Assembly: GCA_965235115.1 (NCBI GenBank) | Contig: OZ249439.1 | Span: 8,866,001 to 8,930,000 of the forward strand | DNA: 64,000 nucleotides | From: Laetmonice hystrix | Taxonomy: Eukaryota | Direction of reading: 5' to 3' | In this document: piece by piece, positions 36 through 42,493 of the stretch | Numbering within the stretch: position 1 is the first letter of the stretch | How the letters are laid out: each line of letters starts with the position of its first letter | Notes under the pieces: generated by a model | The model's database searches: none | The model's input: only the letters and a program-made list of their open reading frames with translations | Told to the model about the DNA's origin: nothing | Made by a program: the position numbers and the translations under genes

Positions 36-212
36 CTCTGGCATAGTGCCACATCCGGCCACAGTTGACTGATAGCTGAAGGCGTGGTCTGAAGGCGCAC
101 ACCGACGTGTCCCAGTCAGACAGTGTCCCCGTACAGTGCTGCCCCCTGAGGGTAGTGTTCACTGCGATCGTCCCTCGTAGACCGCAGTCATTCTGCGTGG
201 TCACCGCCCCAA
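36..212 (-). CDS. Coding exon 14 (start of module B2): GAVTTQNDCGLRGTIAVNTTLRGQHCTGTLSDWDTSVCAFRPRLQLSVNCGRMWHYAR
   Basis: Acceptor ttttgtgttttgtag, donor AG|gttagc, 177 nt, phase 1-1, four Cys. Confidence 0.88.

Positions 213-42493: not shown

Follow-up and report, generated by a model that had tools for sequence, protein, structure and literature searches.

Whether a chain of short open segments scattered along the minus strand of a 64,000-nt stretch of the Laetmonice hystrix genome (hereafter the window; G000:C4:8866001-8930000, in an assembly of 627 Mb and 35 contigs) constitutes one gene, and what kind of protein such a gene would specify, are the questions raised by this locus. The window contained no N.

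Reconstruction of a 17-exon gene

The original prediction had joined 14 small exons into one frame opening with a signal peptide. The exon model was rebuilt here independently of that list, the boundaries being taken from AG/GT signals and phase compatibility. Starting anchors from a six-frame scan were a ShKT-like open segment (nt 8007-8180, minus strand) and a fragment at about nt 18348-18286 of the same strand with a sub-threshold DUF7043 match, and a profile of the paralogues from the same genome matched a colinear run of short minus-strand pieces in the window. The rebuilt chain comprised 14 minus-strand exons within the window, with AG acceptors, GT donors and compatible phases throughout, and arrived at the same outer limits as the original one, nt 42493 and 36. 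Three further exons were located within 2.5 kb to the left of the window (left-flank locus L025), giving a total of 17 coding exons (Table 1), a gene span of about 45 kb on the minus strand, and a spliced ORF of 2115 nt encoding 704 residues without internal stop, every intron being GT-AG.

Exon 16, which is reached via a phase-0 donor after CW, reads IVQTFPERMAYKPWKEAYKLERAQCG... and closely parallels "FNYPERMNEKPWRNAVLLNRGQCG" of the Dimorphilus protein (see below). The last exon, preceded by a pyrimidine tract (13 of 14 positions) 5' of its acceptor, encodes a conserved Cys, a Pro/Ser/Lys-rich stretch, a hydrophobic tail and the stop codon. Weak donors were observed for exon 15 (GTAGAG) and exon 16 (GTGATG).

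Several candidates were considered and rejected. Termination of the protein at CWVEY* in L025 was ruled out, as both the subfamily profile and the chiton gene described below show a phase-0 junction after CW followed by two more exons. An open frame containing YMYISQC at position -1762 relative to the window was dropped as the next exon in favour of a much better match at -1403, and a longer form of exon 6 with the donor at nt 15042 was ruled out by profile continuity and the chiton junction. The segment at nt 710-757 (minus strand) in intron 12, TTGEKKVILNLPGCPG, matched with a tblastn E-value of about 0.5, had no usable donor before a stop and was displaced by exons 13 and 14; its frame resembles the "...LPRCPG" segment of the family, by chance or as an exon relic.

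Exon 1 lies beyond an 18-kb intron. Scanning nt 24366-50000, 26 kb upstream of exon 2, left two candidates that passed the filters, only one of which had both a typical signal peptide and the consensus donor GTAAGT. This exon is the least secure part of the model, being placed by sequence signals only. Three public sequencing runs covering the locus, all from one study, contained 73-93% of the intron-rich words and are therefore genomic DNA; among the public runs, no RNA runs covering the locus were found.

Table 1. Exons of the window gene, tandem repeats and examples of intronless paralogues. Positions are those of the window unless another locus or contig is given; E-values in exon rows are those of the subfamily HMM.
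Feature	Position	Strand	Remarks
Exon 1	42439..42493	-	ATG and signal peptide MTTATCFVVLIALAQLAK; donor GTAAGT, phase 1; in frame with exon 2
Exon 2	24196..24365	-	Start of module A1 (HCVYPEF...); E=1.3e-9, profile positions 23-73
Exon 3	22755..22873	-	Module A1; E=0.0013, profile positions 75-113; donor GTAAGT
Exon 4	18288..18352	-	Core of module A1 YYMCLKFVPRNQNIIQ; E=0.024; donor-side junction 18288/15394 at chiton position and phase
Exon 5	15320..15394	-	End of A1 (DLC...EDWPLL); E=6e-4; junction common to chiton gene
Exon 6	15063..15139	-	Start of module B1 (FSPIVGGFDF); E=0.005, contiguous with exon 7; phase-0 junction as in chiton
Exon 7	14627..14744	-	Module B1 METECVRGEGILF; E=1.1e-11; also matched independently in genome search with protein P0137
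Exon 8	14247..14338	-	Module B1 VWGSWMEDDFLYIVT; E=4.3e-6; junction common to chiton gene
Exon 9	13326..13512	-	End of module B1; E=5.4e-7; donor GTAAGT
Exon 10	8012..8131	-	ShKT domain, six cysteines; both junctions common to chiton gene
Exon 11	3146..3347	-	Module A2 (ECRFSGDIRKEW...YYANG); E=1.5e-17; 45% identity to P0137 (genome search)
Exon 12	2143..2216	-	Core of module A2 (CRPRYTCVNF); E=0.0025; phase-2 junction as in chiton
Exon 13	454..558	-	A2/B2 linker and start of B2 DLCHFEDDPQPL; E=2.8e-7; junctions common to chiton gene
Exon 14	36..212	-	Module B2, final exon inside the window; E=7.4e-9
Exons 15, 16, 17 (left flank)	L025 8933-9021, 8456-8597, 7560-7807		Complete module B2 and add stalk and hydrophobic tail
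Minisatellite, 53 nt x 14	23455..24196	.	Tandem Repeats Finder; last base 24196 coincides with that of exon 2, the array continuing from the exon 2 donor
Minisatellite, 67 nt x 25	24369..26014	.	Tandem Repeats Finder; ends 4 nt upstream of exon 2 acceptor
Minisatellite, 39 nt x 34	11326-12648		Intron 9
Minisatellite, 54 nt x 25	29545-30874		Intron 1
Intronless paralogues (examples)	G000:C2:32797342, C21:21336611, C3:44555504, C4:40459388		Signal peptide-A-B-ShK-A-B

Several introns carry minisatellites (Table 1). The 53-nt unit downstream of exon 2 repeats the donor-like sequence GGTCAGT, which provides the intron with 14 cryptic donors in tandem. The 39-nt array is open in several frames, which results in a spurious ORF of 605 residues (nt 11185-12999, minus strand) mimicking a Thr/Pro-rich mucin in tblastn. 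Upstream of the gene, nt 42500-64000 of the window contained no convincing coding ORF, the long ORFs there (e.g. nt 49175-49800, 51823-52284 and 58826-59602) being translations of tandem repeats.

Support for the splice model

A subfamily profile was built from the seven relatives closest to the window product, sharing 27% to 36% identity over nearly the full length. This profile gave a separate match to every exon from 2 to 16, running colinearly from profile position 23 to 604, with E-values of 1.5e-17 to 0.03, and inside the gene no competing minus-strand match to it was observed except one weak stray at 35.8 kb. The spliced product of 17 exons gave an end-to-end match to the subfamily profile (hmmsearch, 569 bits, E=6.4e-175), and the profile of the intronless paralogues from the same genome matched with 168 bits (E=1.7e-53). 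The tblastx comparison with the paralogue regions was swamped by interspersed repeats.

The exact exon junctions of the NCBI-annotated gene LOC135473592 of the chiton Liolophura sinensis (L032) were computed for comparison. All 13 comparable introns, corresponding to window junctions 4 to 16, lie at the same aligned residue and in the same phase in both genes. This agreement is the strongest support for the splice model, and it decides in favour of the shorter exon 6 and of the weak donors assigned to exons 15 and 16. As judged from sequence comparison, the exon chain far exceeds chance, confirming that the exons are real and belong to one gene.

Domain architecture and cysteine framework

The predicted protein consists of a signal peptide, DUF7043, DUF7042, ShKT, a second DUF7043 and DUF7042, a Pro/Ser/Lys-rich stalk and a hydrophobic C-terminal segment; the signal peptide and the C-terminal anchor were called by hydropathy reading. 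In Pfam searches, the segment at nt 8007-8180 (minus strand) matched ShK with 23.7 bits (cut-off 20.9, E=7.4e-5) and exon 4 alone matched DUF7043 with 19.4 bits, below the cut-off of 27, whereas ten other exons submitted singly gave no matches. In the closest relatives, Pfam detected DUF7043 (often twice), DUF7042, DUF7044 and ShK, and a corresponding set was found in the paralogues of the same genome (see below), the DUF7043 and DUF7042 models scoring above their cut-offs in both groups; this accords with the suggestion that modules A and B resemble DUF7043 and DUF7042. Alignment of the N-terminal half of the family against the C-terminal half by hhalign gave 98.3% probability (E=1.7e-14, 209 columns), indicating that the A-B-ShKT-A-B reading is correct; BLAST of the two halves of the window protein itself gave nothing significant, the duplication being visible at the profile level only. 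The original prediction had seen module A twice and module B once in full and once in part around a single ShKT domain, and the partial copy proved to be module B2 cut by the window edge. Retrieval of the adjacent left sequence, which it had advised for the C-terminus, completed module B2 and yielded the stalk and the hydrophobic tail.

The window protein possesses 30 ectodomain cysteines and keeps Cys at 25 of the 28 family columns in which Cys reaches 60% or more. Two cysteines that are 96% conserved were replaced together in module B1, by S171 (exon 6) and V232 (exon 8), while their counterparts in module B2 were kept; their joint replacement probably reflects the loss of one disulfide, specific to the window copy. 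At the third column lacking Cys, conservation is only 63%, and P0112, the closest full-length relative, has Ser there as well. A hydrophobic C-terminus is present in 114 of 135 full-length relatives and likewise in the window protein, where it is followed by 12 residues beginning with R-H. The hydrophobic segment may be a signal for GPI attachment or, alternatively, a membrane anchor with a short tail.

Relatives and distribution of the family

The whole library contained 585 clusters of the family at E<=1e-3, with 240 at <=1e-30, and the 150 best representatives, among them the seven used for the subfamily profile, were retrieved. In agreement with the original prediction, in which no named gene had been recognised, the nearest proteins were RefSeq entries designated "uncharacterized protein LOC..." and a Dimorphilus entry, sharing 31% to 35% identity over nearly the full length (BLASTP, E=1e-94 to 1e-107), and no characterised protein matched. 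The same A-B-ShK-A-B domain order was found in proteins of Liolophura sinensis (LOC135473592, XP_064609521.1), Lineus longissimus (LOC135493212, XP_064636375.1), Tubulanus polymorphus (LOC141905324, XP_074650265.1) and Dimorphilus gyrociliatus (DgyrCDS4120, CAD5115114.1). The window protein shares with these four spiralian proteins the domain order, the cysteine framework, the length class and the hydrophobic C-terminal tail, and the last exon of the chiton gene, with 81 residues, is the same size as the exon for stalk and hydrophobic tail in the window gene. However, identity amounts to only about one third, no clear one-to-one orthologue was recovered, and the window protein differs in lacking the Cys pair of module B1 (C170/C231 in P0112) and in having an extra Cys in its B2. 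When the protein collection was searched with alignments of paralogues and exon fragments, only relatives of the first-row paralogue were recovered; that collection apparently contains neither the window protein nor a close orthologue.

Clusters in the AlphaFold DB showed the two-barrel unit (see below) in brachiopod, gastropod, bivalve, flatworm, insect, collembolan, rotifer, nematode, tardigrade, barnacle and sea anemone proteins, in some of which it is fused to MAM, SRCR or Sema domains. The ESM Atlas contained a 70-member cluster of a 700-residue "ShKT domain-containing protein", commonest in Mollusca. No papers were found in the literature on DUF7042-7045. The earlier description of the protein as undescribed thus holds with regard to function, which is unstudied, but not with regard to the family, which is already catalogued as Pfam DUFs, RefSeq entries, about 585 clusters and at least 20 loci in this genome. 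On the basis of its sequence, the window gene is classed as a divergent member of a catalogued, unstudied family (Pfam PF23070, PF23069 and PF01549).

Paralogues in the same genome

A genome-wide search with PF23070 and PF23069 gave at least 21 DUF7043 and at least 19 DUF7042 matches, representing at least 20 paralogous loci. At least 11 of the paralogues (L001-L008, L012, L013 and L015) are single uninterrupted ORFs of 650-1235 residues. Pfam analysis of two of these intronless paralogues detected DUF7043 and DUF7042 in two stretches each, DUF7044 and ShK. They share the layout of signal peptide-A-B-ShK-A-B with the window gene but possess no introns, and their proteins share only about 22% identity with the window protein. 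Retroposition may have given rise to these intronless copies. One intronless copy, at C4:40.46 Mb, has a long Thr/Pro-rich mucin-like tail. Members of the intron-containing subfamily were also observed at C4:31.31-31.41 Mb and C2:50.75 Mb. At C4:8988576-9017595, 58-90 kb to the right of the window, exon-sized matches to P0137 and PF23070 were located on one and the same strand, suggesting a paralogue in tandem with the window gene.

Predicted fold

The fold was modelled on P0112 (31% identity to the window protein) in two pieces, using AlphaFold with family alignments. The A1-B1-ShKT piece was modelled with pLDDT 92.4 and pTM 0.87, and the A2-B2 piece with pLDDT 89.1 and pTM 0.85. Both models are all-beta, each module forming an up-and-down sheet of about 7-9 strands, with helices confined to the ShKT part. 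As shown for this closest relative, the four modules are predicted to be small up-and-down beta-barrels of the lipocalin/calycin type, braced by disulfides. A G-x-W near the first strand of module A2 is nearly invariant in the family, the window copy reading K-E-W; we take this family motif to be reminiscent of the G-x-W motif of lipocalins.

No solved structure related by sequence was found when the PDB was searched with the family profile. Foldseek searches of the PDB returned no clearly significant match, the top rows being tandem-barrel proteins, for instance MoaF, fHbp and DUF3598 (E=8e-4 to 0.02). In an exhaustive search with VIA-align, pallilysin Tp0751 of Treponema pallidum (5JK2), a small lipocalin-type barrel at the cell surface, was the top match for both module types, with Z 9.8 (99 residues, rmsd 2.9) to P0112 module A2 and Z 9.7 (95 residues, rmsd 2.8) to P0112 module B1. 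Tp0751, however, is a bacterial single barrel without the disulfide framework and without sequence similarity to the modules (6% to 12% identity), so that the resemblance is one of fold only. The next matches, at Z 6-8, were dozens of lipocalins, lipocalin-like proteins, FABPs, nitrobindin and designed barrels, among them RBP4 (4O9S), a salivary lipocalin (5H9K) and lipocalin-like proteins of Bacteroides (4GZV and 3HTY). These have up-and-down barrels of similar size, whereas the window family has four barrels per chain, is cysteine-rich and is predicted to be membrane-tethered. Matches at Z 6-10 may mean a common barrel arrangement only, not homology or function.

Possible function and alternative explanations

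Gene identity and architecture can be assigned with high confidence. As a whole, the reading of the locus as an intact 17-exon gene for a stalked A-B-ShKT-A-B surface protein, anchored at its C-terminus and carrying binding barrels, is probable, whereas a function as binding receptor is put forward tentatively. The protein would reside on the outer face of the cell, tethered to the membrane. Its barrels would hold a small hydrophobic molecule, as lipocalins do, or else a protein or a matrix component, in the manner of pallilysin, an adhesin with the lipocalin fold, and the ShKT domain would serve as a rigid disulfide-knotted connector or interaction module rather than a channel toxin. The earlier guess of a ligand-binding or receptor-like protein fits the predicted lipocalin-like barrels and C-terminal membrane anchor.

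One alternative is that the model does not describe a single functional gene, with exon 1 belonging elsewhere and the true 5' end being another, or with the gene silent or decaying. This might be argued from the minisatellites that fill the 18-kb first intron, the two weak donors and the loss of two family-conserved cysteines. But the 17 exons hold one frame with no stop across their entire length and keep all the conserved splice positions, the cysteines were lost as a pair, as expected of a dispensable disulfide rather than of decay, and exon 1 was the only one of the two candidates to combine a signal peptide of typical form with a perfect GTAAGT donor; we regard this explanation as quite unlikely. 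Still less likely is a role as a secreted channel modulator of the ShKT type or as a venom component, with the ShKT domain as the active part. ShKT toxins block K+ channels, and the window protein does possess a genuine six-cysteine ShK domain scoring above the Pfam threshold of the toxin family (PF01549). This domain, however, makes up 36 of 704 residues and lies amid four barrels, in a protein with a predicted C-terminal membrane anchor, as an internal accessory domain and not as a free peptide of about 35-40 residues. Nor is the Lys-Tyr dyad evident, the window protein reading H-E-Y (MHEYGNYC before Cys4) at what is presumably the position of the dyad in ShK. A survey of ShKT proteins in a mollusc (Cumia) reported short ShK-like peptides, CAP-ShKT and M12-ShKT (PMC6409789), architectures that do not include A-B-ShKT-A-B.

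A lineage-expanded immune or recognition receptor, whose barrels bind microbial or other non-self molecules and whose many paralogues reflect diversifying selection, is unlikely too, if less so than the two explanations above. The abundance of DUF7043 and DUF7042 matches in the genome, including the putative tandem paralogue and many intronless copies, the fusion of the two-barrel unit to MAM, SRCR and Sema in other invertebrates, and the anchor-like C-terminus of most family members would all accord with it. On the other hand, the low identity between the paralogues and the window protein implies old divergence and not a recent arms race, and the gene structure kept in comparison with the chiton argues for an old, stable function. 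The reading preferred here, a tethered protein with ligand-binding barrels, could be carried further. The DUF7043/DUF7042 unit would then represent an unrecognised, metazoan-wide class of lipocalin-like binding modules, and the window gene a tethered "tetra-lipocalin" receptor of the ancestral intron-rich lineage that gave rise to the intronless copies by retroposition. We consider this extension rather doubtful, yet less so than the immune receptor; if it were true, the receptor would capture a small hydrophobic ligand, such as a lipid, sterol, pigment or pheromone, or an extracellular matrix partner at the cell surface.

Implications

No new kind of system is revealed by this locus. An exon chain read by hand has become a gene model of 17 exons with good support, and the analysis provides the first structural reading, four predicted lipocalin-like barrels and a ShKT domain on a putative membrane anchor, for a family known only as DUFs and comprising about 585 clusters in protostomes and cnidarians. 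The presence in one genome of intron-rich copies, possibly ancestral, versus many intronless ones bears on how the family expanded. For spiralian cell-surface biology, tethered ligand-binding barrels would constitute a testable hypothesis.
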